A model generated the notes under the pieces. That model searched no databases. It was not told the origin of the DNA and saw only the letters and a list, made by a program, of their open reading frames with translations. Both the position numbers and the translations under genes were made by a program. DNA of 64,000 nucleotides from Neoconidiobolus thromboides FSU 785 (taxonomy: Eukaryota; Fungi; Entomophthoromycota): assembly GCA_025603075.1 (NCBI GenBank), contig MU626370.1, positions 6,034-70,033 on the forward strand. Reading direction: 5' to 3'. Shown piece by piece: positions 5,500 to 38,462 of the stretch (position 1 is the first letter of the stretch; the number at the start of each line of letters is the position of its first letter).

Positions 5500-8481
5500 A
5501 TGGAAGAGTTAGAAAATTATTTTGAAATTGATAAATCGTTACAATTTGCTGAAGAAAATAGCCAAAATTCGGAAAAATTTCATCAACCTAGTCCAAGATA
5601 TAATGAGCACATTGATTATGGAGAAATTGAAAAGATTAAAGTGGTAGGTCGAGGTGTTTTTGGTAAAGTTTATAGGTGTCGATATCGAGCTCAAATTTAT
5701 GCTTTAAAAACATTAACCAATTCCTTGATGTTAACTTCAAAAGAAAAGGAACGTCATGTTCAAAGTTTAAAATTAGAAGCAAGAGCTTTATCACAGATTC
5801 GAGTATGTGATTATGTGATTGAATTAGCAGGCACCTGTTTAGATAAATCAAACCAAATTTGTATCCTTATGGAATATGTACATGGGCCTAATATGCACCA
5901 ATTTATGGAAAATTTTCACCATCGTTTACCTTGGAAAAAGAAAGAAGCTTTAGCTTGGGAAATAGCAGCTGGGGTAACTTTTATTCATGATAGAAATATT
6001 TTACATCGAGATTTAAAATCAGATAATATCCTTATCTCCTTATCTCCTTTATCTGATACTGAAAAATTAGAAGTGGATATCTCTGATTTAATTAAGTGTG
6101 AACCAAACTTACAACATATCCATGCCAAAATTGCTGATTTTGGTATTTGTAAAATCACCAATGAAACTTATTCAACCAAAGAATCCTTCCGTGGGGCTGG
6201 TTCTCCACCTTGGATGGCACCAGAATTGTGTATGGATGAAACTTTGGTACCGACAAAACAGAGTGATGTTTATAGTTTAGGTTGGATCCTTTGGGAATTA
6301 GCTGTCTCAGATGGTCGTCGACCTTATGAAGGGCATACTATGAACCAAATCTTCCAATTTAAAGTTTCTGGTTATGTAGAACCTTTACCAAATGAAATTC
6401 CAGAATATTATAGGGAATTGGTCATTGCTTGTACTTCTTACGAACCTTTGGACCGTCCCTTTGCTGGCCAAGTAATGGAAACAATTCGAGATGAACAAGA
6501 AGCGGATAATGGGGAAGACGAATTAATCGGCTATTATGAAACGTTCGGACAATTGCATGGTACTCACAACTTTCATCCTACTCGATTGTCCAATGTCAAT
6601 GATGTTAGTATGCCAAAAGATAGAGCATTTGGTGGTGAATCAAAGGGGATCAATTTAGCTTCTGAGGCTTCTTTAAAAGAGTTTACAACTCCAGAAAAAA
6701 AAGAAGCACTCTTAGAAAGTTTAGCTAAAAAATGCGTTGAAAATGATTTTACAGCTCGTACGGATATGCTAATACTCTTTGGTATAAGAGCAGATACCGA
6801 AGCTATCTTATTATGTGGTATGGGGGATTGTTATAGTTCTGGATCCCATGGATTTACTAATATTGTTCGAGCGATTATATGCTATGAAAATTCAGCAAGT
6901 TTAAATTATTCCCCAGCTATCTGTAAGCTAGGTTTATGTTATCGAGATGGTATAGGAAAGCAACAATCCATTACTAAAGCTATTCAATGTTTCGAAATGG
7001 CAGCTGAATTGGATGATCCTATTGCTCAATGCTGCCTTGGTGAATGCTATACTTTAGGGATTGGGGTTGACCAAGATTTTCAAATGGCTTTGCAATTTTT
7101 TGAACTTTCAGCGGGTAAAGATAATTCAGATGCTCAAATGCAATTAGGTAAATGTTACTATAATGGGCTTGGGGTTAAAGTAGATACTAATAAAGCTCAC
7201 AATTATTTTATGCTTGCTGCTTCACAAGATCATCCAGAAGCACAATATATCCTCGGTGTAATGTATGCCCAAGGGATTTCTAAACCACCTAATAAGGTTG
7301 AATCTTTTAACTTTTTCCTTAAGGCTGCCTTACTAGATCACCCAGAAGCACAGAATAATGTTGGTAGCTGTTATTATTTTGGAAGAGGAGTAGAAAAAGA
7401 TTATGTTAAAGCAACAGAGTGGTTTTTTAAAGCTGCATCCCAAGACTCAGCTTCAGCACAAAACAACTTAGGTCATTGTTATGAGATGGGCCATGGAGTA
7501 GAAATGAACACTTCAGAAGCATTTAATTGGTTTCAAAAAGCAGCGAACAACCATCATCCAGGGGCACAAAATTCATTAGCTAATTTTTATATGGCAGGGC
7601 GAGCAGCACCCAAATCGCCTTTTTTGGCATTTGAATGGTATAGTAAATCAGCGGAAAAAAACCATCCAAGAGGGCAAAAAAATCTTGCACTTTGCTATTA
7701 TGAAGGAGTGGGCACAGCAAAAGATTATAAAGAAGCGTATTATTGGTATACAAAGGCAGCTGAACAAGGTAATGTTGATGCTATGATGAAATTAGGCAAA
7801 TTGGCTAGCAATGGAGAAGGCGTAACTGCTGATTATTCGCTTGCTTTTTATTGGTATAACAGAGCAGCTGAGACGAGTGATCCAAATGCACAAATTGCAG
7901 TAGGTAAATGTTATTTAAGAGGAAAGGGGGTGCCTAAAAACCTCGATGATGGATTTTTATGGATCTCTAAAGCAGCTTCACAAGATAATATGACAGCTAT
8001 CACTTACCTTGGTATTTGCTTTTTAAATGGCCATGGATGTACTAAAAATCCTATCAAAGCTTATCAATGCTTCTTAAAGGCATCTACTATGGGATCAGCC
8101 CAAGCTAGTTTTAATCTCGGTGATTTGTATCGTAAGGGAGTTGGTACGCCAAATGGCTCTGATTTGTTAAAAGCAGTCGAATATTACGAAAGAGCAGCAA
8201 GTAAACGCCATGCTATGGCCTTGTTTTATCTTGGAGTATGTTATCATCGTGGGTTAGGGGCAGGTACGGATTTAAGTAAATCTATCAATTATCTTAAAGA
8301 ATCCATATCGTTGGGATGTAAAGAAGCGGAGTATTATTTAGAAAAAGTCAAGGCATTGAATAGTAGTCCAAATGTTAAAAATAGCATAGAAAATAAAAGA
8401 CAACTTCATCCAGGTCGACCACCATCACCAACAGGTAACAATGTAGAAAACCACAAAGACAAAGACTGCCTTATTTTATAG
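5500..8481 (+). CDS. TKL-type protein kinase + 14 SEL1-like repeats + C-terminal CaaX (CLIL), paralogue 1
   Basis: GRGVFGKV, ALK, HRDLKSDN, DFG, WMAPE; 14 ~36-aa SEL1 repeats; ends DCLIL*; single exon. Confidence 0.93.
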   Translation: MEELENYFEIDKSLQFAEENSQNSEKFHQPSPRYNEHIDYGEIEKIKVVGRGVFGKVYRCRYRAQIYALKTLTNSLMLTSKEKERHVQSLKLEARALSQIRVCDYVIELAGTCLDKSNQICILMEYVHGPNMHQFMENFHHRLPWKKKEALAWEIAAGVTFIHDRNILHRDLKSDNILISLSPLSDTEKLEVDISDLIKCEPNLQHIHAKIADFGICKITNETYSTKESFRGAGSPPWMAPELCMDETLVPTKQSDVYSLGWILWELAVSDGRRPYEGHTMNQIFQFKVSGYVEPLPNEIPEYYRELVIACTSYEPLDRPFAGQVMETIRDEQEADNGEDELIGYYETFGQLHGTHNFHPTRLSNVNDVSMPKDRAFGGESKGINLASEASLKEFTTPEKKEALLESLAKKCVENDFTARTDMLILFGIRADTEAILLCGMGDCYSSGSHGFTNIVRAIICYENSASLNYSPAICKLGLCYRDGIGKQQSITKAIQCFEMAAELDDPIAQCCLGECYTLGIGVDQDFQMALQFFELSAGKDNSDAQMQLGKCYYNGLGVKVDTNKAHNYFMLAASQDHPEAQYILGVMYAQGISKPPNKVESFNFFLKAALLDHPEAQNNVGSCYYFGRGVEKDYVKATEWFFKAASQDSASAQNNLGHCYEMGHGVEMNTSEAFNWFQKAANNHHPGAQNSLANFYMAGRAAPKSPFLAFEWYSKSAEKNHPRGQKNLALCYYEGVGTAKDYKEAYYWYTKAAEQGNVDAMMKLGKLASNGEGVTADYSLAFYWYNRAAETSDPNAQIAVGKCYLRGKGVPKNLDDGFLWISKAASQDNMTAITYLGICFLNGHGCTKNPIKAYQCFLKASTMGSAQASFNLGDLYRKGVGTPNGSDLLKAVEYYERAASKRHAMALFYLGVCYHRGLGAGTDLSKSINYLKESISLGCKEAEYYLEKVKALNSSPNVKNSIENKRQLHPGRPPSPTGNNVENHKDKDCLIL

Positions 8482-8995
8482 TCTAATGGGGTCTATTTTG
8501 CTATTACTAACCTTTTTAAATATTGTTGTTGTTAAGTATGAGAACTTTTGATTTAGTATTATTTTTAATATAAATTAATTAACTATTTTATTATAATATT
8601 TTATTTTATAATATTTTATAATATGGGGTTGTCTGAACTAGTTTCATTATTTTATTCAATTTTTAAATATTTTGTATTTTAAAAACTTCGCTTAAAACTC
8701 TATGAAATAATTTTTTTATTAAAACAAAAGTACCCTGACACAGTTCTAAACCATTCTATTATAATTTGTACTCTAAGTTGGCTGAATTTCTACTAGATCT
8801 TAAATATATATTCTTATAAAACTTTATTGAGGAACGTTTATTATTGACTCCTTTATAACCAACATTGCAGATTTGTTATCAGATAAATAAACTATTTTAA
8901 TGTTATAATTACATTATTAATATATTGCCAAGTCAATAAATAGCTATATGAGAGGGAGTGGTTAGCCCCAAAACTATAATTAACCATCCCTATAT

Positions 8996-9090
8996 GGGAG
9001 TGTTTTGACTTCACTATTTTTTCCATTTTTTAAGCGCTATTTAAGCGGAAATTTTGTTAGTAAAATTCTTAAACACAAAAATACATCCCC
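8996..9090. mobile_element. MITE copy, TSD ATAT
   Basis: ATAT|GGGAGTGTTTT...AAAAATACATCCCC|ATAT. Confidence 0.9.
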
Positions 9091-9192
9091 ATATATTACA
9101 AATAATATAATAATAGTTTTTACTTATTATTGCAACTACTTATTGACTATTTATTAACTTAGCTATTAATAACTTAAGTAATATCAACATTT

Positions 9193-9287
9193 GAGGATGT
9201 GTTTTCTTGTTTAAGAATTTTACTAACAATCTTTCCACTCAAATAGCGCTTAAAAAATGGAAAAATAATAAAACTAAAAACAGCCCC
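9193..9287. mobile_element. MITE copy, TSD ATTT
   Basis: ATTT|GAGGATGTGTTTT...AAAAACAGCCCC|ATTT. Confidence 0.9.
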
Positions 9288-9289
9288 AT

Positions 9290-10860
9290 TTAATAGTCTA
9301 TTTCTATCATTTAACAAACTACTTACTTGCTTAGTAAATATCGAAAATTTTAAATTCTCTGTTATTTTCGTAGGGTAAGCTGGGATTAATCTTTTAATTT
9401 TTGTATTTTCTATAGACCCTATGATTCCAATTGGAGCTATATCGCTTTTTTGATGTATTAAATACTGGATAACAATGCAGTTTATTGCATGTTTAATAAA
9501 ATCTAGATACTTCTTAATGCCTTGTATCTCTATTATTTTGTGTTTTTGTTTCTTTCATACTTTTTAAAAATTATATCTGTTTTCCCATTATCAATAGTCA
9601 AGTTATTAATTTTACCATGTTCACAAGTAAAAGTCTCAAACCTTGAAATTAATTGATTGATGTTTTCTATTTTACCTGATGCTTCAAAACTATTTTCCCA
9701 TTTTGAAAGATTCCCAAAATGTCCATCAACTATACTTTTTCCATCATGCTCAGCAAAAAAATTAAGGTCAACGTTCAAACTACTATTCATTTTAGGAATT
9801 TGTTTAAATATATAATGTAGGAACTCTTGAGATTTAAAATGATTTCCTGTACCTGCCCATATATCAATTTTTGTAAACTTTTTAAAAAGCTCTGTAGAGA
9901 TTAAATCAATTAAAAAACCTCCTGCATATCCTGAATCATGATTCAATATTTCAGATAAATAATCAAAATAAACTTTGCCTATTGTTTTATCATCTTTTAA
10001 ATATAATACACCAAAGCCTAATACTGATATAGCTTGTTTATTATGATGATCTAGATTTATTGAATCTGGTCTTGTTCCTATTTCCATATTTTGTTTAAAA
10101 TCTAAAATCATTATACAACTTCTATTATTTAATTTTTAATAGTTTCATTAAATGTGTTTTTTTGAGTATCAACACATAATTCATCTAATTTGTATAATTT
10201 TTCTTCATTGAAAATTTCTTCTACCTCTGCTTTGTTTTTTATTACTGTATTTATTTTATTTTCAAACAACTTTTTTCTAACTGTATACTGGGCATATATA
10301 TTACATGAATATGTTTTTTTACATTTTTGAAATTATTTGGTATATGTTTAAAAAAGGTTGACCTAGCTACTACTTTATCTTTTAAATCATTAAAATATTT
10401 ACTATATGAGAATGTATTTTTATGTTTAAGAACTTTACTAACAATTCTTTCGCTCAAATAGTGCTTAAAAAATGGAAAAATAATGAAACCAAAAAAAACA
10501 TCTCCATATATCATTCTTCTACTTTTTACTTTTATTTAATATATATTATCTGACGAATATTTACTATCATTATTTTTTTATTAAATCTTAATGAAATAGT
10601 TGAATTATTTAGTCAATGTTGTATAATAGTTTGAATTTGGTCATCTTTAATTTTTTTGTATTTTTAATAATAGGTTGTAACATTGATATTTTATTACTAT
10701 TATTATTTATCTTTGAACAATTATATTGATTTCTATTTATATTAAACCCAAAACTTTTACACTCATCAAAAGAATATACTGAAGCTGTAGTTGATAATAA
10801 CGCTACTTGTTGATCTTTATTCTCTGTTTTCCTTAATGTACTAATTTTATACATTATTCG
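9290..10860 (-). pseudogene. Decayed DNA-transposon DDD transposase, Sola-like, frameshifted and MITE-interrupted
   Basis: ORF pieces 10609-10854, 10251-10407 and 9533-10111, plus a shifted frame to ~9290. Motifs ILDFKQN, IWA(G)TGNHFKSQEF, FFAEHDGKSIVDGHFG and IEIQGIKKYLDF; ICPV appears in a shifted frame. Confidence 0.7.
10408..10505. mobile_element. MITE copy inside transposase pseudogene, TSD ATAT
   Basis: ATAT|GAGAATGTATTTTT...AAAAAAACATCTCC|ATAT. Confidence 0.9.
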
Positions 10861-11427
10861 TTAAGTTTATTATTATCGATAGTAAACTTTGATAATATAT
10901 CTTTTCTTTGTTTTGTTTTATTATAAGATTCCATAAACACTGGGTTGTTATAATTAGCTCTTAATTAATGTAAATAAATTACAATGTTTATATTGTGTAC
11001 TCCTCCCTATTGTATTGAAATTTTCAAAAATTCCATTTCAAAGTTTAGTTATGAAGTTTGCATTTTATTTTTATTTCACCAAAAAATAAAGTCAAATAAC
11101 TCTATTTATACAATTATATAGTTATACATTATATATTTACTAAACATTTAACATAAGTAACATGAAACATATAATTAGGAAAGTTAGCTATTTAAGAAAA
11201 GGAAACAATTAAAATAAGTTTTAAATAAAGATTAAATTTAGGCTTTTTAGATTTAACCGTTGCATTAGACACAAATTTAAAAACTTAAAATTTGGATTAA
11301 CTTCTAAATTCTGAAACCAATTTGGACAACCTCATATTTTAATTGGCTATTAGCTAAGTCATGTTTTTCAGCTTATATAAAATAAAATTGATTACATATT
11401 TCTTTTAAACATGATTGCAGTAAAAAG

Positions 11428-12030
11428 ATGGGATCAGCTAGTAGCTTGCAAGTAGAAGAAAAACAAAATAGATTTCGCGTAATAACTCAAGTAATAAAGG
11501 ACAACTATAACCAAACAGATCTTCCAACTTATTACAATCTAAGAATAACACAAACAGAACATAATTTTGAAATGGAGCTAATACTAAAAGAAGAATTTCT
11601 TATTAATCAAGGTAACTTAATACGTATTTCATGTTAATCCTTTAATCTTAATAAAAACATTCAAGTATTTAATGAGCAATTTAACAACCATCTACAGTTT
11701 GGTAACCCCAGAAAGTTTACTTTTAGTTTACTTGATGTTAGTGGAAATTTAGGTCTTAATGAAGACTATGCACCTATCGCAACTGAAATTCATTATGGAC
11801 AAAAATATAGGTTTGAGTTGGATGAACATTCGGAAGAAAACAAAGCAAGACTTAAAAGCTATAGTAAAATTAAGTCTTACTTCAGTAATTTTAATTATTA
11901 CTAGATTATCGATACCGAAACCTGTCTAATTGTGGTGCTCTAAATACTTGGGGATCTAACTCTTTGAGTACTGTAAATGGGCCATCGGGATCCACTTCTT
12001 GGTTGGATTCTAAACTTAAAATTTCCGTAA
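11428..12030 (+). CDS. Hypothetical spliced protein (~170 aa) with N-myristoylation motif MGSASS
   Basis: Frame is restored by intron 11612-11665 (GTAACT..CAAG) and a possible intron 11864-11904. Without the second splice the ORF ends at 11904. Confidence 0.55.
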
Positions 12031-12466
12031 TTGTTTCAGCCACTATTATAAGTAAAGAATGGTTATTTATTTGTTATCCTATTTTGTTTACGATAATAAT
12101 ATTTCCTTTTGTTCAACTTTTTTACTGTTATCAATTATAAAAAATGAAGATATTGCTCACTAAAGCTAAGCCATATTTAAATAATAGTACTGAATACTAA
12201 TAATAAATGAAAGTCCAAATAACATCTATAGCACTGAACTCTTTTAAAAAAATAAAGCTTACCATCATATTACAATCTATTAACTATTGAGACGAATATA
12301 AGTTTAAAATACATGAACCCACTTGAAACCTAAATTTTTATTTATTTATTTATTTTCATAATCCCTGGTACCGTAAATGAATTAGTAATAAAAATATAAA
12401 AGGCCGTTACTATACTCTAACTTAAATAAATCGTTTTGATAAATTAGAACTGTCCTCTATCACACT

Positions 12467-13546: not shown

Positions 13547-13620
13547 TTAATTTGGTTTCTCTATTTTAGTTTTGTAAAAAGTATAATCTCAAACTAATTG
13601 TAACTTTTACAATTTTTATA

Positions 13621-15847: not shown

Positions 15848-18583
15848 ATGTTTCAAGAAGAGATAAAATACGAAAAAATAAAGAAGAGTGTTCTTCTAGG
15901 AAAGGGTAGTTTTGGCAAAGTATACAAGTGTAATTATGAAGGTTTTACATGTGCATTAAAGACTTTAGTTGCAACGGATAGGTTGAGGGAACAACAGAGA
16001 AAAAAATATGCAGATAGTTTACGTTTAGAAGCTAAAACATTAGCTAAGCTTGGTCGTTGTGAAAACATTGTTCAATATATTGGTACTTGTATTGATCCAA
16101 AACAACGTCTCTGTGTGCTTATGGAGTTTGTCAATGGTAAAAATTTGGCCAAGTTTATTGAAGATGAGCTACCCTTCCACCCATGGTCGCTTCGTGACAA
16201 CATTACTTTAGATATTGCTAAGGGGGTTGCTTATATCCATAGTAAAAATATCATCCACCGAGACCTTAAAGCCGAAAATATTCTCATAGATAACGAAGAC
16301 CATTTTAAAGCTAAAATCGCTGATTTTGGTGTAGCAAAAGTTTCTGAAGAAGTTCGTGGTACTATTGAAACGTTCTCTGGAGCTGGTACTCCTCCATGGA
16401 TGGCTCCAGAATTGTTTTTAAATAGTAAAGCGCTTCCTAGTAAAAAAACAGATATGTATTCTTTTGGTATGATTATGTGGGAAATGGCAAGTGGTAAAAG
16501 GCCATATGAAGATAAAACAAAGGGTGAGCTCCGTCATATGAAAGAAAAAGGTATTATAGAACCTGTTCCTCCTACTGTTCCTCCTACCTACGAACGTCTT
16601 TTACGCAGATGTATGGATCTTGATCCCGAAAACCGCCCTGATTCAACTGAGATTGCTGACTTTCTTAAGCGGGGCCGTCTTAATAAGGATAACTATGAAA
16701 CCAATATCTGTATTCAAGATGATGATGATTTAGCCACATTATTATTAGTTGATGTCGAACGTGCAAATCAAATTAAAAGGCCAGAACGTCCAGTTGATTT
16801 TGACAATAGTAACTTGATGGAGGATAGTGATAGTGATGAAGATAATGAAGATTATCATGGATCCAAATTGGAAAATCTTATTTCATCATTTACTCAAGGA
16901 AATGAGGAAGTTCGTGATAGGCTTATTGAAGAATATGATGTCAATCCTGATGATCCAACCTCTTTAGAATTATCTTTAGGTAACGTACATTATAATGGAC
17001 ACCGTGTTCCAGTAAATTATGATGTAGCAGTCAAACATTATGAAAAAGCTTTAGAACTTGGAAGCAATGAAGCAGTTTTGAAATTAGGCATATGCTACAA
17101 GACTGGTAATGGTAAACCCCTTGACCTTGAAAAAGCTTTTGGACTTTTCCAAAAGGCAGATAAGAATCAAGTTGCAGGTGTTAAAAGTCATATTGGTGAA
17201 TGCTATTTCCATGGTCGTGGGGTTGATTCAAATATAGATGAAGCCATTAAAGCTTTCCGTGATGGTGCATCTGAGAATGATGCAGTTTGCCATTTTTATT
17301 TAGGTAGATGTTATTATTCTGGTTTGGGCTTACCAAAAGATTTCCAAAAAGCTGTTAAACATTTTGCTTCTGCTGCTCGTCAAGGTCATGCTGAAGCCCA
17401 GCTTAACATTGGTATCGTTCATAAGATGGGTATCACTAAGCCACCAGATGATGTTGAAGCCTTCCGTTGGTTCCTTAAATCTGCCGAGCAAGGTAATGCT
17501 ACAGCACAAAACAACGTTGGATCATGCTATTATTTTGGTGTTGGCATAAATCAAAACCTTTCTTCTGCTGTTAAATGGTTTAAAGCTTCTGCCAATCAAG
17601 GAAATACAGGTGGCATGCATAATATTGCAGACTGTTATTTGAATGGCAAAGGTGTTGAAAAAGATGAGAAGGCTGCCTTTGATTGGTTCCTTAAAGCTGC
17701 TACCCTAGGTCATGGTTTAGCTCAAAGTACGCTTGCAAATATTTATTTATCTGGAAATGTTGTTTCCCGTGATGTAGATAAGGCATTTGAGTGGTTTAAA
17801 GCTTCAGCTGAAACTGGTAATGTACAAGGACAATATGGTTTAGGTGTTTGTTATAGAGATGGACTTGGAACTATTAAAAATTATGAGTTAGCCATGAGGT
17901 CTTTAGAAACCGCTGCTGATCAAGGTTCGCCACAAGCCCAAATCGCATTAGCGCTCCTTCATTTGGATCGTAATAATATAAGCCCTAGTAGAGATGAGCA
18001 TCAAGCTTTCCGTTGGTTCCACACTGCAGCAGAAACTAATGACTCAAATGCTCAATTCCATCTTGGACGTTGTTATGTTATGGGTATCGGTATAGATAAA
18101 GATGAGCGTAAAGGGTTCCAATGTCTTCTAAAATCAGCGAATCAAGGTCATGTTGAAGCACAAAATACACTTGGTTCATGTTATTACCAAGGTCTTGGTA
18201 CCCCAACTGATTATAATGAAGCAGTATCGTGGTTCATGAAAGCTTCCCAATCCGGACATGCACTTGCTGAATTTAATTTGGCAGAATGTTATCTTAAAGG
18301 TAGAGGAGTTGAACAATCCACAGCTTTAGCTGTGGACTGGTACCGTAAATCTGCAGAGCATAATCACCCCAATGCACAATTTGTTTTAGGATCGATGTAC
18401 GATAAAGGACAAGGAGTTCCAGTTGATATTGAGGCAGCTTTAAGGTACTATAGATTAGCCGCGCATAAAATTCCACAAGCACAAAGGCGTATTGATATGA
18501 TTACCGCACGTATAACAAAACCTCTACCAGAACCAGTTGCCCCACCTCAACAACGTGAAGGAGAGTGCTGTCTAATCCTCTAA
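15848..18583 (+). CDS. TKL-type protein kinase + 14 SEL1-like repeats + C-terminal CCLIL, paralogue 2
   Basis: GKGSFGKV, ALK, HRDLKAEN, DFG, WMAPE; 14 SEL1 repeats; ends ECCLIL*; coding region single exon (likely 5'UTR intron ~15739-15820). Confidence 0.93.
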   Translation: MFQEEIKYEKIKKSVLLGKGSFGKVYKCNYEGFTCALKTLVATDRLREQQRKKYADSLRLEAKTLAKLGRCENIVQYIGTCIDPKQRLCVLMEFVNGKNLAKFIEDELPFHPWSLRDNITLDIAKGVAYIHSKNIIHRDLKAENILIDNEDHFKAKIADFGVAKVSEEVRGTIETFSGAGTPPWMAPELFLNSKALPSKKTDMYSFGMIMWEMASGKRPYEDKTKGELRHMKEKGIIEPVPPTVPPTYERLLRRCMDLDPENRPDSTEIADFLKRGRLNKDNYETNICIQDDDDLATLLLVDVERANQIKRPERPVDFDNSNLMEDSDSDEDNEDYHGSKLENLISSFTQGNEEVRDRLIEEYDVNPDDPTSLELSLGNVHYNGHRVPVNYDVAVKHYEKALELGSNEAVLKLGICYKTGNGKPLDLEKAFGLFQKADKNQVAGVKSHIGECYFHGRGVDSNIDEAIKAFRDGASENDAVCHFYLGRCYYSGLGLPKDFQKAVKHFASAARQGHAEAQLNIGIVHKMGITKPPDDVEAFRWFLKSAEQGNATAQNNVGSCYYFGVGINQNLSSAVKWFKASANQGNTGGMHNIADCYLNGKGVEKDEKAAFDWFLKAATLGHGLAQSTLANIYLSGNVVSRDVDKAFEWFKASAETGNVQGQYGLGVCYRDGLGTIKNYELAMRSLETAADQGSPQAQIALALLHLDRNNISPSRDEHQAFRWFHTAAETNDSNAQFHLGRCYVMGIGIDKDERKGFQCLLKSANQGHVEAQNTLGSCYYQGLGTPTDYNEAVSWFMKASQSGHALAEFNLAECYLKGRGVEQSTALAVDWYRKSAEHNHPNAQFVLGSMYDKGQGVPVDIEAALRYYRLAAHKIPQAQRRIDMITARITKPLPEPVAPPQQREGECCLIL

Positions 18584-25921: not shown

Positions 25922-28447
25922 ATGAATCAAGAATATATTGAACCTAGTAAACGAGAGAAGTACGGAAGTTCTGGTAAAAGCTATCCAGTGAAAACTAATT
26001 TTTTTCAAATCCGCCATAACAATTCTGGTACAATTCACCATTATGACGTCAATATCACCCCTGAGGTCCCAGTAGGGGTGAATAAAGACGTATTTAAAGC
26101 ATTCGAAGTAAAAAATGCTAACAATGCTAAAGTATTGGGAGGTATATGCGCAGTCTTTGATGGAGCCAAGAACATGTTTTCACCAAGGGCACTACCATTT
26201 GGAAAGCAGTTTGTTGACGAGGTTATTTTACCTGAGGAGGGTGGTAAAAAAAGTAACGAACCAAGAAAATTTAAACTCAAGATGATGAAGGTCAACGAAG
26301 TACCAATCGATATTAATGAGATGCACCAGCGTACATCCAACGGTTTGACTGCAATGATGGCGTTTAACGTCTTGTTCAGGCACCAGAATGAAACTAATTT
26401 CGTTCAGGTTAAAAATTCATTTTTTATCCGAGAGGATGTAAATGAGCTTTCTGGAGGTGTGGAGTTATGGCCAGGTTTCTTTCGCTCCTTCAACTCAGTT
26501 GCTGATGGGTTTGCATTAAACATAGATACTACTATTTGTAGCTTTTATCAACCTGGCCCTGTAGTTGATATCGTTGCTAAGTTGATTGGGTTAAGAAATC
26601 CAAGCGATTTGAGAGACTCAAGAACAAGCAAATATTTTAGAAAAATTAAATCTTTCTTAAAAGGTTTGAAGGTTACCATGTCCATCAAAGGTGAGCAACC
26701 TCGTAGTTACAAAATCCGTAGTGTATCGGACAACTCTGCAGTTGACCAAAAGTTTGACTTGATTGAGGATGATGTCAATAAAGGTCGTATTAGTGTAGCA
26801 AAATACATTGAGAATAAATACAGCATCAAGTTACAGTACCCCAATCTACCTTGTGTTGAAATCAAAAAGGGGGTTTTATTACCATTAGAACTATTTACAA
26901 TCTTGCCTGGGCAAAGATACGTTAAAAAGTTGGATGAAAAACAAACAAGTGAGATGATCAAGGTAACTTGCATTAAACCATATTTAAGATTCCAGAAAAT
27001 TGCGAATGGGATGAGACGTATGGCTTTTGAAAAAAACAAATACATCAAGCAGTTTGGGTTGGAAGTTACTACAACTGCTAAAGAAGTACCTGCAAGACTA
27101 TTATCTGCGCCAACCATAAAATATAATCCTTCTTCCAAGGATCATTCTATCCGTCCTGCTAACGGGTCCTGGAACATGTTAGGAAAAAGGTTGTTCGAAG
27201 GAAAGCAAATATCTACTTGGGGAGTGGCTGTATACGCCAGAGAAAATTGGTTACGACGTCCTCAAGTTGAAAAATTTGTGGATTTGTTTAGCAATGTATG
27301 CATAGATACTGGAATGAAAGTGACAGATAAAAGACCTATAATCAAATATTTAAATCCATTTTCTAATAGACTTGAAGAGGAATTAGGTAATTTTTATTCT
27401 AGCATAAAGAACAACGGAAAAGCAGCCCCTCAGTTAATTCTGTGCATTTTACCAGATCGTGGTAGTGAGCTTTATGGGGCAATTAAGTCAGCTGCTGAGT
27501 TGAAAATTGGAGTCATGACTCAATGTGTACAAGCTAAAAAAGTAGAACGTCCAGACAAGCAGTACTGTGCTAACGTATGCTTAAAAGTAAATGCAAAATT
27601 AGGAGGCATTAATGCTGCAATGCATGAAAATGATTTAGGAGGGATAAATAAGATCCCAACTTTAATCATAGGTGCAGATGTAACTCACCCTGCTCCAGGG
27701 AATCCAGAAGCCGCTAGTATTGCTGCAGCAATAGGATCTATTGATTTCACTGGGACAAAATATGCATCTTCTATTCGAGCACAACATTCTAGACAAGAAG
27801 TGATTTCCGATTTTTCTAATATGATAGTCGATTTGCTGAAGATGTTTTATAAAAATACTAAAACCAAACCTCAAAAAATTATTTACTATCGTGATGGGGT
27901 ATCAGATGGTCAATTCCAAACTGTTTTAATTAATGAAATGAAAGCGATCAAAGTAGCTTGTGCTTCTTTAGAGTCTAATTATAAACCAAAAATAACCTTT
28001 GTTGTTGTCCAAAAGCGTCACCATGCCAGATTTATACCTGTTAAAAGAGAAGATGAAGACCGAAGTGGTAACTGTAAAGCAGGTACTATAGTAGAGGCTG
28101 GTATTTGCCACCCATATTATTTTGACTTTTACCTTCAGTCACATGCAGGATTACAAGGAACTTCACGTCCTTGTCACTATCATGTTTTACATGATGAAAA
28201 TGTTTTTACTACTGATAAATTCCAACAGTTTACTTATAACCTTTGTTATCTCTTTAATAGAGCTACAAAATCAGTATCATTAGTTCCACCAGTTTATTAT
28301 GCTCATTTGGCAGCTACTCGCGCCCGATTTCATTATAAGATTAGTGATGGGATGTCAGATACCACATCCATGGTCTCTATAGGCTCGGAGCAACCCGAGT
28401 CAAAGAAATTAGTTGGGGATCTTGCCACTAAGATGTATTACGTTTAA
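25922..28447 (+). CDS. AGO: Argonaute (N-PAZ-MID-PIWI), intronless
   Basis: TNFF, YPNLPCV..LPLELF, TQCV, KVNAKLGG; PIWI tetrad GADVTH / RQEVI / YRDGVSDGQF / YYAHLAA. Confidence 0.97.
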   Translation: MNQEYIEPSKREKYGSSGKSYPVKTNFFQIRHNNSGTIHHYDVNITPEVPVGVNKDVFKAFEVKNANNAKVLGGICAVFDGAKNMFSPRALPFGKQFVDEVILPEEGGKKSNEPRKFKLKMMKVNEVPIDINEMHQRTSNGLTAMMAFNVLFRHQNETNFVQVKNSFFIREDVNELSGGVELWPGFFRSFNSVADGFALNIDTTICSFYQPGPVVDIVAKLIGLRNPSDLRDSRTSKYFRKIKSFLKGLKVTMSIKGEQPRSYKIRSVSDNSAVDQKFDLIEDDVNKGRISVAKYIENKYSIKLQYPNLPCVEIKKGVLLPLELFTILPGQRYVKKLDEKQTSEMIKVTCIKPYLRFQKIANGMRRMAFEKNKYIKQFGLEVTTTAKEVPARLLSAPTIKYNPSSKDHSIRPANGSWNMLGKRLFEGKQISTWGVAVYARENWLRRPQVEKFVDLFSNVCIDTGMKVTDKRPIIKYLNPFSNRLEEELGNFYSSIKNNGKAAPQLILCILPDRGSELYGAIKSAAELKIGVMTQCVQAKKVERPDKQYCANVCLKVNAKLGGINAAMHENDLGGINKIPTLIIGADVTHPAPGNPEAASIAAAIGSIDFTGTKYASSIRAQHSRQEVISDFSNMIVDLLKMFYKNTKTKPQKIIYYRDGVSDGQFQTVLINEMKAIKVACASLESNYKPKITFVVVQKRHHARFIPVKREDEDRSGNCKAGTIVEAGICHPYYFDFYLQSHAGLQGTSRPCHYHVLHDENVFTTDKFQQFTYNLCYLFNRATKSVSLVPPVYYAHLAATRARFHYKISDGMSDTTSMVSIGSEQPESKKLVGDLATKMYYV

Positions 28448-30403: not shown

Positions 30404-30502
30404 GGGGATATTCTTTTGGCTTCGTTACTTTTCCCATTTTCTAAGTGCTATTTAAGCGGGAAGATTGTTGGTAAAAATTATTAAACAAAAAAATACATCA
30501 CT
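30404..30502. mobile_element. MITE copy, TSD ATAT
   Basis: ATAT|GGGGATATTCTTTT...AAAAATACATCACT|ATAT. Confidence 0.85.
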
Positions 30503-32234
30503 ATATGATCCTGATTCGAACACTTTAATAAACAGTTTAGTTTATGATATTTGACAAAATGTCGTATTGCTTACTTATGAATATCACTATGTATCTGCCA
30601 TAAATACCATCATGTTTATTTTTCTAATAAAGCTATATGATGACTTTATTTAGTGTCATAAATTAAGTTTTAAGAAGATAAATTTTAATTTATAAATATT
30701 TGATATGTTAGTTATTATTGTTCAAGTTAGATATAAAATAGGAATAGATTTAATTTACTATCATTATTTTAAAGCTATCAAAATAAAATATGTTTATTGG
30801 ATATACACAATTAATAAATTAATAAAAACTTTAATATATAATGTTGTACTAACTTAAAATAAAGCTATAAAATGAGGACAAAAAAACGAATTAAATTTAT
30901 AAATTGCTATTTTAATAAATGATACATTAATAAATATAGATTAAATTCAATTATCTAATCACCTATTCTAAAACTTATTTTTGCATTTAAATCATTTTGA
31001 AGTAAAATATCTCTAATTATCGTGTTTACGCTTATATAGCCGATATCATTAATGTAGTATCTAAAATTATTACATTCTTAAAGCTTTGATTTTAAATCTC
31101 TAAATTTAAAAAAAATCCTATCATTTTGCACAAACAATTCTTTAATTTGAAGATGATATTATCTCGCATGTGTACAAAGTAAAGTAATTTAATTTGCTAA
31201 TTTTTACCGAAACTTCTTTTCTAAAATATCAAAATAGCAGAAGGTTCCATAGGAAAATAATAGTTTATATACGGGTTTATTCTTTGAATACACCAAGTTC
31301 TACTCAAAGCGGTAATAAAAACCTTGTATACTAAAGGGATAGACTCAAGTTTTGCTTCTCAATAGCTGGTATCTTCATGTATGTTAATATTTTGCTTCAT
31401 ATTCCTTAATATTAATGAACAAACTAGAATCTTTTAACAATGATTTTATTGTCCGTGATATTACTGTATATTAATTCAATAACAACAGATATAAATCCCA
31501 CCTTTATTTTTCAGGTTATAAACTCGCTTTCTTTCTAAAAAGGTGTACCAGATTAAAAATTAGAAGTGAAGCTGGCCATGTTTTTAAAATTAGAATATTT
31601 AACTTGAATGATAGATATCATATTTGGATACAAGGTATTTTTAAGAATATTTAAGAGACACAAATCAAATAGAACTCTGTCATAAAATATATATAAGGGT
31701 AAAGGTAGAGGGTGGAGTTTATGAGCAAAAGGTATTTTATTTATTTCTATAATTTATGACTCCAAGTCGTAATTTAATTTACATTTGTACTTTTAATAAA
31801 GCTATCTTATACCACTGATAACTTGTTATAAAGATCATTCTCAGATATTTACAAAATTTAATTCAGTATTTTTGAACCTTATCTTAATTTAATTATATTG
31901 TCATTGGTGCTTACTACCATAATTGGAGTTAATTTACTATTATCTGAATTCCACTTTAATGACCATGCTTTGTTTTAATATGAAAGGTGAAAGTGGAACA
32001 AGATCTTATTGGTTGAAGCTATATGAATTGCTATGACCAATAAAATTTAATTTTTATTTTAACATTCTTTAAAGGAAATGATTTAATTTGAAAAAAATGA
32101 AAAGTATAAAAGAGAGAAGGATAGACTTGAAGTTCTTTGGCTAGTTTCATCTATTTTTACAAAACTAATAGTAATAACTTTAAGACTCTACTGATTTAGA
32201 TACCTCAAAGTTGCTTCATCCCTAATATTATATA

Positions 32235-34268
32235 ATGAAATTCACTTCTCCTATTTTAAAGACCTTACTTTTGGGTCTTTTAGCTAACCCTGCTTTAGCT
32301 ATCCAGCGTATTAAATTCTCTACCTGCCCTGGTGCCGCTTGTATTATGCCAGTAGATGGTGCTGAATTCCTTACTGGTGCCCAATTCGATATTCGTGTTG
32401 AGATCCATGAAGAAAGTCAAAATAAAGCAAATGGTGACTTTGAGTTAACTGTTTCCAAACTTGGTCGCAATGGTGTTGAAGAAGAACCAATTTTAGTCAA
32501 CAACTTTTTCAAGCCTATTAACTCTAACCCAGATTTAGAAAGATGGAACTTCACTTACACTAAAGATTCTAAAGATTACTACCAATCATTAGATGGTGAC
32601 CTTTCCGTAGAACGCCCAGTTCAAGTTGCCTCTAAAATTTGGCGTAACGTTCACTTTAAATCCTCTGGTAAATATATTGCCACTATCAAATATAATAATG
32701 GGGAAACTCACAAAGTTGAATGGATCGTCCGCCCTGCTGCTTGTAAGCGTATTGCTCGTAATGCCATTCTTTTCATTGCTGATGGTACGACCATCAACAT
32801 GATTACCGCTGCTCGTGTCATGGCCCGTAAACAACGTAATGGTAAATTCCCACATAAATTTGAAATGGATATGACCGATTATATTGGACATGTACAAACT
32901 CATTCTCTTGATGCAATGATGACTGACTCTGCCAACTCTGCCTCAGCTTATCACACTGGTCACAAAACCGCCGTTAATGCTTTAGGTGTTTACCCTGATT
33001 CTTCGCCAAATCATTTTGATGATCCAAAACAAGAATTGTTAGCTGAGTTAGCTCGTCGTCGTTCTAAATCTCGTGGTGGCAAAATGGCTATTGGTATTGT
33101 TACTACTGCTGAAGTTCAAGATGCTACCCCAGCCGCTGTATTTGCTCATACCCGTCGTCGTGACGATAAAGCCGAAATCGTTGATCAACTTATCAACGGT
33201 GCTAAAAATGCTAGTATTCCAGTCATTGCTGATGTCTACTTAGGTGGAGGTGGTGCTTACTTCCATAATAAGACTGGAGGAAAATCCCTCAAAGGAAACG
33301 ATTACTACAAAACTTTTGAAAAACTTGGTTACAACATTGTTAATAATGGAGAACAACTTAGAAACTACAATGAAGATAAACCTCTTCTTGGTATCTTCCA
33401 CAAAGGAAACATGGATGTCTTTGTAGATCGTTCTATGTTAAAAGATAACCTTAAAGGAAACAAAGCTTCCCCAGTTGGTGACAACAAAGATGCTTTAGAC
33501 CAACCTGGATTAGTAGATATGACCAAGAAAACTTTAAATATTCTTAAGAAACGTGGTGGAGATGCCGGTTTCTTTGCTATGATTGAAGCTGCTTCCCCAG
33601 ATAAGCAAATGCACTCTATGGATTTCCATCGTTCCCTTGTTGAAATTATCGAGTTTGACAATGCTATTAAAGCCGCTGTTGAATGGGCCCGTAAGAACGA
33701 TCCATCCACTTTGATCGTCATTACTGCTGATCACGGACATGGTTTTGATGTTTACGGTACTGTTGATACTGAAATTTTCAACAATGCTCCAGTTGACGAG
33801 CAAAATCTTTCTAAACGTAATGCTATTGGTGTATATGAATCCTCTGGATGGCCAGACTATAGCCCTGATGCTAACGGTTATCCAGCAGAGCTTAATGTAC
33901 GTACCGTATTCGCTGCCGCAACCAACAATAAGCCAGATAACTTTGAAAACTTCCAAATGAACCGCACTAAATCTCGTAAACCAGCTGTTGATTCTCACTC
34001 AAAAGAACATAAATACCAGGTTTCAGTTGCCAACAAAGACTTTGGTAAAGGTGGTATGTTTGTAGGCGGCAACCTTCCAGTTGAGAATGACCAAGCTGTT
34101 CACTCCATGACTGATGTAGGTATTTTTGCCTCTGGTCCAGGAGCTCATTTATTTGGTAAAGTTATGGATTCTACTGAAGTTTTCTTTAACTTTGCTTATG
34201 CTCTTGGCCTTGGTGAAGTTGATCCAAAAGAATGTTCTAAATGCCCAAAGAAGAGAAAGCACTATTAA
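32235..34268 (+). CDS. Secreted PhoA-family alkaline phosphatase with extra N-terminal domain, intronless
   Basis: Signal peptide; ILFIADG, TDSANSAS (Ser nucleophile), IEAASPDKQMH, TADHGH, HSMTDV. Confidence 0.9.
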   Translation: MKFTSPILKTLLLGLLANPALAIQRIKFSTCPGAACIMPVDGAEFLTGAQFDIRVEIHEESQNKANGDFELTVSKLGRNGVEEEPILVNNFFKPINSNPDLERWNFTYTKDSKDYYQSLDGDLSVERPVQVASKIWRNVHFKSSGKYIATIKYNNGETHKVEWIVRPAACKRIARNAILFIADGTTINMITAARVMARKQRNGKFPHKFEMDMTDYIGHVQTHSLDAMMTDSANSASAYHTGHKTAVNALGVYPDSSPNHFDDPKQELLAELARRRSKSRGGKMAIGIVTTAEVQDATPAAVFAHTRRRDDKAEIVDQLINGAKNASIPVIADVYLGGGGAYFHNKTGGKSLKGNDYYKTFEKLGYNIVNNGEQLRNYNEDKPLLGIFHKGNMDVFVDRSMLKDNLKGNKASPVGDNKDALDQPGLVDMTKKTLNILKKRGGDAGFFAMIEAASPDKQMHSMDFHRSLVEIIEFDNAIKAAVEWARKNDPSTLIVITADHGHGFDVYGTVDTEIFNNAPVDEQNLSKRNAIGVYESSGWPDYSPDANGYPAELNVRTVFAAATNNKPDNFENFQMNRTKSRKPAVDSHSKEHKYQVSVANKDFGKGGMFVGGNLPVENDQAVHSMTDVGIFASGPGAHLFGKVMDSTEVFFNFAYALGLGEVDPKECSKCPKKRKHY

Positions 34269-34402
34269 GCTTATAAAATTAATTTGATATATTTAATAAA
34301 CTATTAATAATTATTTAATATTCTGATTATTACTTTCTTTATATCAACTATTACATAGTAAAAAAATGTATAAATAATGTTTAATATTTTAATTTGATTT
34401 AT

Positions 34403-34694
34403 TTAAGCAGAGTTACATTTCTCACATTCTTTCATATCATCAAATGGTCCACATAATGGATCTTCAGCATCAACTTTAACACAACCATTGGTAGTAGCTA
34501 TATACTGATAGGTATCAATCTTGCAATCCCCAGGTCTAGCTGAAGATAAGCATAATAAAGCTCTATTTGAAAGTTAATATGGTTAATAAGTTGAATTTAT
34601 GTTTATACCTGTCATCTTCACTGATGGGACTTAAAGCTGCAACGGTGCTTAAACCAAGAAGTAAAGATATGAAGTTATTTTTTTTGATATACAT
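34403..34694 (-). CDS. 81-aa secreted 6-Cys microprotein, BPTI/Kunitz-like (missed by ORF track)
   Basis: Exon 1 34694-34609, 46-nt GT-AG intron 34608-34563, exon 2 34562-34403: MYIKKNNFISLLLGLSTVAALSPISEDDRALLCLSSARPGDCKIDTYQYIATTNGCVKVDAEDPLCGPFDDMKECEKCNSA*. Confidence 0.75.
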
Positions 34695-34992
34695 AGTTTG
34701 ACGGTTAATACAAAAATAAAGTTTTTTTCCTAAAGCTTTATAGTCTTTTTAAAAAACATAAGGTAATTATTGGTTTTAAAATCAAGTTGATCATTAAAGA
34801 TATCCTAATTCTAAGTTGAAAATTGAAAATCAAACATATTAAATTACTTTTTTTATTCTGACAGTTTATCACACCCTGATTTAATATTTGCAAAATAGCA
34901 GTTCATCCTATGCTTGAAAATAAAATAGTATTTTTAAAATTATTAAAATTATGTTTGTATACACTTAAACTAAGCTAATCGAAATAGCATAT

Positions 34993-35087
34993 GGGTGTCT
35001 TTTTTTGTTCAAGAACCTTGGTAATATCTTTTTTATTTAATAGTGCTTAAAAATGGAAAAAGCGATTAAAGTAAAAAAGACATATCT
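34993..35087. mobile_element. Diverged MITE copy, TSD ATAT
   Basis: Retains AATAGTGCTTAAAAATGGAAAAA core; ATAT on both sides. Confidence 0.7.
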
Positions 35088-35585
35088 ATATAAAGACAAA
35101 AGGTTAAATAATATGGTTTTTATATAATATTTATATTTAGTTTTACATATAACATGAACTCAATTAATATATTAAATACCATCATTTTAGCAAGCGCAAA
35201 ATATCTTATTCTAATTTAAAACTCATTTATTACATTTACTATTGATTTTCTTTAGATGACAATCTTAGTATTTGTGAAGTATATTAAAAATTTAAACACT
35301 TAAATCAAAAAGTACTTTATTAAAATTTATTGTCTTTTAAATTGAGTTATTGAAAATAAGAAATAAAAAATATTTAAAGCTGATGATATATTTATGTTTA
35401 TCAAATGGTTGATTTGGTTTTTAATATTTAAACTTTATTACCTAATACAGATTAACATATTTAAAACTATAAATAAAATTATTTGAATAATTAGTTATAT
35501 GAAAGGATTATAACTGAACTTAATAAATCAAGGATATAAATTGTATCCCTATTTTGGATGCTATGCTAGTACCTTATAGGTGTGA

Positions 35586-38462
35586 TCACATCAGTGAGCA
35601 ATCTTTTTTCTCCTTTTTTTCTTTTTTCTCCTTCTTGGAGTCCGAGTTATTTGAAGAATATGTGAAATTTGTGTCGCCATAGTTTGTGCTTGCTAATTTA
35701 GAATTATATCCGTTTACACTTCCATTATAAGTTTGGGTATGAACGGATCCTGGTTGTGAATGTATAAGGTTTTGATACCCCTGTGTTTGAGACTTATTAC
35801 GTGATTTTTCCATTCGCTCTTTTAATTCTTCTAACCTCTTTTTAGCTGGGTCAAACCCTTGATTAGCAGCAGATTCATAACAGCGCATTGCAGCCTGCAT
35901 ATCTTTATAAAATACACCTTCCCCCCTTTCGTGGCATGCCCCTAAGTTAAACATAGCAAATGGAGATCCAAGGTCAGCAGCTTTAGTATACCATTCAACT
36001 GCAGAAAATGAGTCTTGTGCAACCCCTCGACCTGTTTGATAGCATTGGGCTAGATTAGTCATTGCAGAAGCATTATTTTGCTTCGCCGCCATTAAATAAT
36101 ATTCAAATGCTTTTTCAGGGTTTATTTCAACACCTTTACCAGCGGAATAGCAAGTTCCTACATTCGATTGTGCATCTGGGTTACCTTTATCTGCTAGTTT
36201 CAAATAACATTTAAAGCTTTCTTGTTCTGAGGGTTGAACGCCCAAACCATCACGATAGCACGAAGCTAAAGCTAATGTAGCTTGTGAATGCCCTTCTTCG
36301 GAGGCATGATAAAACCATCTAAAGGCTTGTATATGATCTGCTTGAACTCCGTTTCCGTTAAAATAACATGATGCCAACATATACATACCTTCGGATTGTC
36401 CAGATTCGGCAGCAAGTTTTGAATAATGGTAACCAAGGTCATTGTTTACACTGGTTCCTTGGCCTTTAAGAAAACACTGAGCCAATGCACATTGAGCACG
36501 TGCGTTACCCTGATCAGCTGCTCTTCTAAACCATTCAAGTGCTTGATTAGAATCCTTTTCTACACCATGGCCCATGAAAAATGAAATAGCAACTGACCTT
36601 TGTGCTCCTGGATGTCCTTGTTCAGCTGCTTTACGGAACCATTTATAAGCTTCTTCATAAGATTGTTTAACTCCCCTACCGTTTGCATAACATTCACCAA
36701 GATTGTGTTGTGCAGCTGGATTGTCCTGCATGGCTGCCTTTTTAAACCATCCAGCAGCCTCTTGTCTATCTTTAGGTGCTCCAAGGCCAAAGTAATAACA
36801 TGAACCAACATTATTTTGAGCACGAGCATGACCCTGGAAAGCTGCTTTACGGAACCATTTAAGGGCTTCCTCATCATCTGGCAATAAACCTATACCATGT
36901 TTATACATAATACCAAGAGAAAATTGGGCATCACTATGTCCCTTTTCTGCGGCCTTTAAATATAATTCATGGGCCTTGGTATATTCTTTATCTACACCTT
37001 CACCGTTATAATAATGGTATCCAAGTAAGTAAAGTGCTTGAGGGAACTCTTTTTCAGCGGATGCTTTCAAATAAGAAATGGCTTTCGAGATATCTACAGG
37101 TACCCCCAACCCAAGAGCATAACATTCTCCAAGAGAACATTGGGCGGCTGGGGAGCCTAAACGGGCAGCTTTGTTAAATAAAGCCAATGCCCTTGAATTA
37201 TCCGGATCTTCAACTCCATAGCCAAACCTATACATAATACCTAAGCGAGTAATGCCCTCAAGGTTACCTAGATTTGCAGCCTTTTGATAATAGTTTAAAG
37301 AAGCACGATAATTTCTACTTAAGCGTGCACCTTCGAAATATAAAGTCCCAACGGCCATATAAAAATCACCCAAATCATCGTCAGGATCCTTCTTCACAAT
37401 AGCAAATAAATCATCCTTAACCCCTTCATTTTCTTTATCCTTTTCAAAATGAGTTAATAACACTTCAAATTTATTTTCATCAATTGGACCAAACATGCCG
37501 GTTTTAGTGTTTAGTGAAGTGGGCTCATAAAATTTAGTCCCAAAAATAGTTCCAAGATCTTGTGCATCAGCTGCATGAATGTTTGTTTCATATAGCCCCA
37601 TTGAGCGCTTAAGAAGTAGTCCAATTTCATCAGCATAGGGTCTCATCACTGGATCTGGGTGTTGACATCTACGCATTAAACTTTCATAATTTGGGGGAGT
37701 TGTTGGTGGAACATCTTCAATTATACCTTCTTGCTTATAAAATCCAATTTTAGAAACATCGGCCGCTTTTTGGTAAGGCCTCATACATGCACTAATTTCC
37801 CACATAACTACCCCCAATGCATAGACATCGGTTTTTTTACTTGGTTCTACACCAAATTTTTGAAAAATTTCTGGAGCCATCCATAAAGGGGATCCAGCAC
37901 CCATAAAAGTGAGTCCTTGTGTCATGCCTATATCTTTCTCAACACGACAAACACCAAAATCGGCAATCTTCGCTCTTAAATTTTCGCCATCAATTTCAAC
38001 TAACACATTATCTGATTTTATATCACGATGAATAATGTTTTTAGCATGAATAAAGTCCAATCCAAGCGCTATTTCCATTGTTAATTTTTGACGAGTAGCC
38101 CAGTTGTACTTATGAAAGTCGTTTTGAATTAATTTAGCCAAATCTTTACCATTAACATATTCCATTAATAAACAGGTACGGTTTTTATCATCAATACAGG
38201 TACCTACAAATTGAACAATATAAGGCGAATGTCCCAAAGTGGCTAAAGTTTTTGCTTCAAGTTTTAATGAAGCTACTATCTTTTTCATTTTATTGACATT
38301 ATCTCCATTCATATTTAATTGTTTCATAGCACATATCATACCAGCATATTTTACTAGGTAAACCGATCCGAAGGCACCTTTCCCTAACTCCCTTTCTTTT
38401 GTTACAAGGTTAAAATCAATGGTTTCATGAAACTTTGCAGCTGTTGCTTGCATAGCTTGCAT
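35586..38462 (-). CDS. TKL-type protein kinase + 14 SEL1-like repeats + polybasic tail + CaaX (CSLM), paralogue 3
   Basis: GKGAFGSV, AMK, HRDIKSDN, DFG, WMAPE; 14 SEL1 repeats; ends KKEKKEKKEKKDCSLM*. Confidence 0.93.
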   Translation of the reverse strand: MQAMQATAAKFHETIDFNLVTKERELGKGAFGSVYLVKYAGMICAMKQLNMNGDNVNKMKKIVASLKLEAKTLATLGHSPYIVQFVGTCIDDKNRTCLLMEYVNGKDLAKLIQNDFHKYNWATRQKLTMEIALGLDFIHAKNIIHRDIKSDNVLVEIDGENLRAKIADFGVCRVEKDIGMTQGLTFMGAGSPLWMAPEIFQKFGVEPSKKTDVYALGVVMWEISACMRPYQKAADVSKIGFYKQEGIIEDVPPTTPPNYESLMRRCQHPDPVMRPYADEIGLLLKRSMGLYETNIHAADAQDLGTIFGTKFYEPTSLNTKTGMFGPIDENKFEVLLTHFEKDKENEGVKDDLFAIVKKDPDDDLGDFYMAVGTLYFEGARLSRNYRASLNYYQKAANLGNLEGITRLGIMYRFGYGVEDPDNSRALALFNKAARLGSPAAQCSLGECYALGLGVPVDISKAISYLKASAEKEFPQALYLLGYHYYNGEGVDKEYTKAHELYLKAAEKGHSDAQFSLGIMYKHGIGLLPDDEEALKWFRKAAFQGHARAQNNVGSCYYFGLGAPKDRQEAAGWFKKAAMQDNPAAQHNLGECYANGRGVKQSYEEAYKWFRKAAEQGHPGAQRSVAISFFMGHGVEKDSNQALEWFRRAADQGNARAQCALAQCFLKGQGTSVNNDLGYHYSKLAAESGQSEGMYMLASCYFNGNGVQADHIQAFRWFYHASEEGHSQATLALASCYRDGLGVQPSEQESFKCYLKLADKGNPDAQSNVGTCYSAGKGVEINPEKAFEYYLMAAKQNNASAMTNLAQCYQTGRGVAQDSFSAVEWYTKAADLGSPFAMFNLGACHERGEGVFYKDMQAAMRCYESAANQGFDPAKKRLEELKERMEKSRNKSQTQGYQNLIHSQPGSVHTQTYNGSVNGYNSKLASTNYGDTNFTYSSNNSDSKKEKKEKKEKKDCSLM

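Follow-up and report, generated by a model that had tools for sequence, protein, structure and literature searches.

The stretch of Neoconidiobolus thromboides FSU 785 DNA considered here (the window; 64,000 nucleotides, positions 6,034 to 70,033 of the forward strand of contig MU626370.1, assembly GCA_025603075.1) is AT-rich, with a G+C content of 24-34%. It contains, between 5 and 39 kb, five long open reading frames (ORFs), three of which (genes 1, 2, and 3) encode proteins with an N-terminal kinase domain and a C-terminal array of Sel1 repeats, at exactly the positions given in a preliminary description of this DNA. The three proteins are mutually about 35% identical and colinear from end to end in a three-way alignment, and genes for a mitochondrial carrier, ribosomal protein L1/L10a, Argonaute, and alkaline phosphatase, unrelated to them, lie in between; the copies are thus diverged and scattered, as had been described, and not tandem. 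In each protein, an intact kinase of the tyrosine kinase-like (TKL) type is joined by an acidic, disordered linker to an alpha-solenoid of 14 repeats, behind which a disordered and rapidly evolving tail leads to a terminal CaaX box. In our estimate, the three genes are likely to be ancient paralogues, belonging to a small family of Ser/Thr kinases that are prenylated and tethered to membranes. The features, in window coordinates, are the following.

5500-8481, forward strand: gene 1, coding sequence, 993 amino acids
5473-8590, forward strand: gene 1, unspliced mRNA with poly(A) added after 8590 (RNA contig)
5605-6489, forward strand: gene 1, kinase domain, residues 36-330 (Pfam)
6490-6807, forward strand: gene 1, acidic linker, residues 331-436, net charge -10 (charge count)
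6808-8316, forward strand: gene 1, 14 Sel1 repeats, residues 437-939 (Pfam and repeat model)
7348-7383, forward strand: gene 1, Sel1 repeat 6 (family alignment)
8317-8478, forward strand: gene 1, variable tail, ending in the CaaX box CLIL (8467-8478)
15848-18583, forward strand: gene 2, coding sequence, 911 amino acids
15857-16672, forward strand: gene 2, kinase domain (Pfam)
16673-16957, forward strand: gene 2, acidic linker, net charge -19 (charge count)
16958-18469, forward strand: gene 2, 14 Sel1 repeats (Pfam and repeat model)
17498-17605, forward strand: gene 2, Sel1 repeat 6 (family alignment)
18470-18568, forward strand: gene 2, tail, followed by the CaaX box CLIL (18569-18580), with a second Cys just before the box
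35586-38462, reverse strand: gene 3, coding sequence, 958 amino acids
37608-38426, reverse strand: gene 3, kinase domain (Pfam)
37362-37607, reverse strand: gene 3, linker, net charge -9 (charge count)
35853-37361, reverse strand: gene 3, 14 Sel1 repeats (Pfam and repeat model)
36720-36827, reverse strand: gene 3, Sel1 repeat 6 (family alignment)
35601-35852, reverse strand: gene 3, long low-complexity tail with a KKEKKEKKEKK run (tail analysis)
35589-35600, reverse strand: gene 3, CaaX box CSLM (sequence)

The N-terminus of all three proteins matches the Pfam families PK_Tyr_Ser-Thr/Pkinase with E-values of 1e-40 to 1e-53. The G-loop, the conserved ATP-binding Lys, the alphaC Glu, and the HRD(L/I)KxxN, DFG, and APE motifs are present in each of them and invariant in an alignment of 22 sequences; with the Pfam match, this full catalytic set bears out the earlier claim of an intact TKL kinase. 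The closest solved structures in the PDB sequence set are those of TAK1, MLK1, CTR1, LIMK1, Roco4, and B-Raf (approximately 1e-26), all of which we take to belong to the TKL group. The HRDxKxxN form is that of a Ser/Thr-type kinase, and all three proteins are, to judge from their sequences, active-looking TKL-type Ser/Thr kinases with intact catalytic residues. Between HRD and DFG, the gene-1 subfamily alone has some 22 additional residues (6028-6108). This insert was considered as an unrecognized intron, and this was ruled out by its retention in the mRNA and in the orthologues P0240 and P0379. Directly after the kinase domain, a Y-E-T-(N/F) motif is found (e.g., residues 283-286 of the gene 2 protein), of which Y, E, and T are invariant in the three paralogues, while the linker is otherwise variable.

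The linkers carry net charges of -10, -19, and -9 in the order of the genes and are acidic, as had been noted. Behind them, Pfam Sel1 (PF08238) is matched with E-values of 1e-112 to 1e-126, with 13, 12, and 14 stretches above threshold in genes 1, 2, and 3, respectively. A repeat hidden Markov model (HMM) built from the three window proteins and used for counting the units gave exactly 14 contiguous repeats of about 36 amino acids in all three, the number reached earlier by manual counting. The AlphaFold2 (AF2) models contain 28 helices, as expected of 14 alpha/alpha Sel1 units. For the gene 2 protein, the model (predicted local distance difference test score, pLDDT, 81.8) comprises a confident kinase, a disordered linker (residues 277-332), two capping helices, the 28 repeat helices, a C-terminal capping helix, and a disordered end (904-911). 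For gene 3, the Sel1 part was modelled with a pLDDT of 88.8 and a disordered tail of about 60 residues. Across the paralogues, repeats 4-7 are the most conserved part of the solenoid; this points to a kind of partner that the paralogues have in common, or to a common contact with the kinase in cis. Among ten aligned family members, repeat 6 is the best conserved, with 15 invariant positions including the AQNN.GS..YFG motif, and it is a candidate for a shared binding patch.

The three proteins end in CLIL (gene 1), CCLIL (gene 2), and CSLM (gene 3), each immediately before the stop codon, in agreement with the CaaX endings claimed before. The preliminary description allowed for chance endings that most homologues would lack; a Cys at position -4 was found in 12 of 12 full-length family members, compared with 3-4 of about 365 other proteins fetched. 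The gene-1 type endings are CLIL, CCIL (Entomophthora muscae), and CKIL. Gene-2 types end in CCLIL in three cases and in CCTIL in a Massospora genomic ORF, and gene-3 types in CSLM, CAIM, CVVM, CNIM, or CATM (Massospora), each preceded by a Lys/Arg run. Every gene-1 and gene-2 type has L as its last residue and every gene-3 type M, and a second signal follows the same sub-clades: an adjacent Cys in most gene-1 and gene-2 types and the polybasic run in gene-3 types. Apart from the box, the tails are unalignable, low-complexity, and from 37 to 88 residues long, and the segment before the box is flexible, with pLDDT below 50 for the last residues in both AF2 models.

An apparent exception without CaaX, Massospora cicadina P0002, was ruled out as such: the genomic ORF of this gene-2 orthologue (L002, 4076-5713) ends in CCTIL and a stop codon, and the deposited model splices past that stop. 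This model (JAKSZP010013285.1, L002:3001-6402) is named ‘Receptor-interacting serine/threonine-protein kinase 1’ and, in addition, lacks some 37 residues from the end of the kinase domain.

A final L directs a CaaX protein to geranylgeranyl transferase I and a final M to farnesyl transferase; in Ras and Rho proteins, the classical second membrane signal is either a run of basic residues or a Cys open to palmitoylation. The conservation of prenylation motifs among homologues is an accepted ranking criterion for functional sites (PMC1847700). By its conservation across the family, the CaaX box is very probably a genuine lipid-anchor signal, as predicted from sequence. No signal peptide or membrane-spanning segment is visible in the three protein sequences, and because of this and of the conserved box, ‘lipid-anchored cytosolic kinase with a Sel1 scaffold’, in which the lipid-anchored cytosolic character proposed earlier is retained, may be considered a fair description.

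The genes are intronless, transcribed, and subject to purifying selection. Within each orthologue group, the CaaX box is retained together with its second signal. In RNA run X1, one contig of 3141 nt spans 5473-8590 with no mismatches and no gaps, and its 3′ end is a non-templated A-run followed by sequencing adapter; the genome after 8590 has no A-run. No read depth was seen upstream of 5354 in this run. The gene 1 mRNA (leader, 27 nt; trailer, 109 nt) is unspliced and polyadenylated, and therefore the CaaX end of its product is the true C-terminus. For genes 2 and 3, 100% of the sampled 31-mers are present in the same run. The ungapped gene 1 mRNA, and the ORFs of genes 2 and 3 with all their sampled words, are in line with the intronless structure described before. 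In runs of related strains or species, 34 of the 36 listed variants inside the gene 1 ORF are synonymous, indicating strong purifying selection. Gene 1 occurs in two forms side by side in RNA runs X2 and X4 (5600-8400): one has the window sequence, and the other differs at about 5% of sites, nearly all synonymous. They could be two alleles or nuclei, or a mixture of strains.

The nearest named relatives are proteins of Entomophthora muscae and Massospora cicadina (61-69% identity). Orthologues were assigned to gene 1 (P0240 of E. muscae, 61%; P0379, 66%), gene 2 (P0001 and P0378, 73%; P0002 of M. cicadina, 62%), and gene 3 (P0003 and P0376, 73%; P0004, 71%; P0121 of Massospora, 69%). A kinase HMM derived from the window proteins gave 400-490 bits for members and no more than 184 for any other match. 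In the kinase-domain tree, the family is a single clade on a long branch, with three sub-clades and a Shimodaira–Hasegawa-like approximate likelihood ratio test (SH-aLRT) value of 99; kinases of Rhizophagus, Gigaspora, and Ambispora fall in a separate, starred clade. The possible sister group, on a weakly supported branch, includes the two named Actinomortierella proteins. An exhaustive profile search of 1.84 billion representatives returned only three full-length colinear clusters, one per paralogue, and the remainder were long generic Sel1 arrays; the three paralogues therefore predate the separation of Neoconidiobolus and Entomophthorales. So far, the family has been found only in Entomophthoromycotina (insect-pathogenic fungi), as judged from the sequences retrieved. 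The preliminary description had viewed these proteins in the frame of the kinase-Sel1 expansion of Glomeromycota. This frame does not hold, since the relatives are those named above and the Rhizophagus kinase-Sel1 proteins, whose kinases belong to the other clade, have about 27% identity to the window proteins and no CaaX. With Massospora and Entomophthora as the top named matches, a Glomeromycota origin was ruled out.

The preliminary description also spoke of a Chs4-like scaffold. Taken as kinship, this would mean that the Sel1-CaaX half descended from Chs4/Skt5 activators and that the proteins activate or phosphorylate chitin synthases at the plasma membrane, to which we assign a low probability. 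Skt5/Chs4 of Saccharomyces cerevisiae and CSR-3 of Neurospora crassa are cytosolic Sel1 proteins with a variable tail and a C-terminal CaaX box, of the farnesyl type, whose Cys is functionally important (PMC12561907), and Foldseek alignments with chitin-synthase regulators extend into the C-terminal part of the query. However, a sequence search with the Sel1-plus-tail part gave no chitin-synthase regulator among the 120 best matches; orthologues came first, followed by generic, mostly bacterial, long Sel1 arrays at 35-42% identity, and the ESM Atlas neighbours of the Sel1 part were generic Sel1 clusters only. No Chs4/Skt5 chain is present in the PDB sequence set, and the direct comparison with Chs4-type regulators is that made by Foldseek between the Sel1 model and the Swiss-Prot models. 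The top of this ranking is occupied by EsiB (31% identity), SEL1L2 and SEL1L (25%), NMB1327, HRD3, and YbeQ (30%). The regulators follow at ranks 13 (Cryptococcus neoformans Csr2, 23%), 17 (Malassezia SKT5, 17%), 20 (S. cerevisiae SKT5, 19%), and 22 (Schizosaccharomyces pombe Chr3, 23%), being no closer to the window Sel1 part in sequence or fold than SEL1L, Hrd3, or bacterial Sel1 proteins. Unlike the 14 regular, consensus-like repeats found here, those of Skt5/Chs4 and CSR-3 are fewer and more diverged, and the regulators have no kinase and only the farnesyl type of CaaX. On these sequence and model comparisons, the Sel1 array of the window proteins is generic, near the Sel1 consensus, and Chs4-like by design (Sel1, tail, and CaaX), not by descent. 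A role in wall synthesis is possible but unsupported.

Expanded kinase and Sel1 families of Glomeromycota have been proposed to serve environmental perception (PMC8647823), and the domain combination of the Rhizophagus kinase-Sel1 proteins is identical to the one described here. The window proteins might, by analogy, be non-self or danger sensors, in which the solenoid reads variable ligands and the kinase triggers the response. This seems quite improbable given the low copy number and orthologues that are 61-73% identical across genera, and the Glomeromycota kinases, lacking CaaX, form a different clade. A fast-evolving non-self receptor is unlikely because of the one-to-one orthology and the purifying selection; the nearly exclusively synonymous variation of gene 1 is the opposite of what a fast-diversifying receptor repertoire would display. 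The slightest chance is given to the view that the C-terminal Cys is not prenylated but serves S-acylation alone, metal or disulfide chemistry, or a docking motif, the proteins being soluble. In its favour, prenylation is read from the sequence, and some boxes have a polar residue at the first ‘a’ position; a Cys placed exactly at -4 in all 12 members despite free variation in tail length, a last residue restricted to L or M by subfamily, the classical second signals, and tails predicted to be disordered, as prenyltransferases require, all argue for prenylation instead. Several points should nevertheless be set against the proposed family of prenylated, membrane-tethered kinases. Prenylation and membrane binding are predictions from the sequence. 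The first ‘a’ position is non-aliphatic in CSLM, CNIM, and CKIL, a deviation that prenyltransferases tolerate. The AF2 model of the gene 2 protein has a predicted template modelling (pTM) score of 0.55 and no fixed arrangement of kinase and solenoid, so regulation in cis is only a possibility. The transcripts of genes 2 and 3 are supported by word content, and the census covers few species and transcriptome contigs, some of unknown organism.

If the window genes encode prenylated, membrane-tethered kinases, the following working may be proposed. By the prenylation rules, the Cys at -4 would be geranylgeranylated in gene-1 and gene-2 types, and the adjacent Cys present in most of them might be palmitoylated, like in RhoB or yeast Ras2. 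In the gene-3 type, the Cys would be farnesylated and assisted by the polybasic stretch, like in K-Ras4B. The lipid would hold the solenoid by its C-terminal end at the cytosolic side of a membrane, each paralogue probably at a different membrane or membrane domain. The anatomy suggests that the solenoid, through repeats 4-7 and chiefly repeat 6, would bind a membrane-proximal partner common to the paralogues, and that the kinase, on a flexible tether of 60-100 residues, would phosphorylate this partner or proteins recruited to it. Insect pathogens of this group are known for switching between wall-less protoplasts and walled cells. A more far-reaching version, which we regard as improbable, is that of a lipid-coded set peculiar to Entomophthoromycotina, in which geranylgeranyl alone, geranylgeranyl with palmitate, and farnesyl with a polybasic run would direct one partner surface (repeats 4-7) to separate membranes and so control a membrane enzyme system, e.g., the wall polysaccharide synthases in the protoplast/walled-cell switch.

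With regard to the surroundings of the genes, the three paralogues lie within 33 kb with housekeeping genes between them, despite a divergence (35% identity) that precedes the split of Neoconidiobolus and Entomophthorales. In the stretches fetched around the E. muscae, Massospora, and Logan genes (at most 10 kb per side, contig permitting, the related genomes being large and fragmented), no second paralogue was found. Between the kinase genes of the window, an intronless Argonaute with the full domain set (ArgoN, PAZ, Mid, and Piwi) is located at 25922-28447 and a secreted-looking alkaline phosphatase at 32235-34268. P0314 (986 amino acids, ending in CLIM), one of the 3-4 other fetched proteins with a Cys at -4, was considered as a distant eukaryotic member and ruled out: it is encoded on a bacterial-looking metagenome contig, and its kinase falls outside the family clade. 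Its gene (L004:10001-12961; ERZ25039465 contig_38964) lies in densely packed surroundings beside genes for a TIR_2 protein and a kinase with faint ankyrin matches, with SecB a few kb downstream. By analogy, P0314 might be a eukaryote-like effector prenylated by a host, as Legionella effectors are known to be.

In early-diverging fungi, few signalling genes are as expanded, or as poorly understood, as those for kinase-Sel1 fusions. The small, conserved, and expressed subset described here, with three lipid addresses on one architecture, offers a tractable entry point and an easily tested prediction, and through it the binding partners of fungal Sel1 solenoids could come to light. Few protein kinases are known to be prenylated, and the family would be a new class among them. 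The family is present in the behaviour-manipulating pathogens E. muscae and M. cicadina, whose signalling is almost unexplored. No description of the family, or of kinase, Sel1, and CaaX combined, was found in the literature, in accordance with the preliminary description, whose author knew of none for the CaaX-anchored form. Kinase-Sel1 fusions (PMC8647823), prenylated Sel1 proteins (PMC12561907), and prenylated kinases (PMC1847700) are each known separately, and their combination is new with respect to the literature found.

Several known systems resemble the window family in part. The kinase-Sel1 proteins of Glomeromycota (Rhizophagus, Gigaspora) and Mortierellomycotina likewise have an N-terminal TKL-like kinase followed by Sel1 repeats; however, they are about 27-31% identical to the window proteins and lack the Cys at -4. 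The Rhizophagus gene families are highly expanded, methylated, and associated with transposable elements (PMC8647823), in contrast to the few conserved paralogues found here. With small GTPases, the window family shares the design of the tail, including a signal type that is fixed per paralogue lineage. The hypervariable regions of K-Ras4B, RhoB, and yeast Ras2 also combine a disordered, variable tail with a CaaX box and a second signal, either a polybasic run with farnesyl or a Cys for palmitate, but the cargo in the window family is a kinase-solenoid of 900-1000 amino acids and not a GTPase. Plant receptor-like cytoplasmic kinases, such as BIK1 and PBS1, are soluble TKL-group kinases held at the membrane by lipid and working with membrane partners; they differ in their N-terminal myristate/palmitate anchor, in the absence of a repeat scaffold, and in lineage. 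Prenylated kinases or kinase subunits with a conserved CaaX box include LKB1/STK11, GRK1 and GRK7, and phosphorylase kinase alpha/beta, which belong to unrelated kinase groups and have no Sel1 solenoid. A Ser/Thr kinase cluster and phosphorylase kinase are listed among the conserved prenylated families (PMC1847700).

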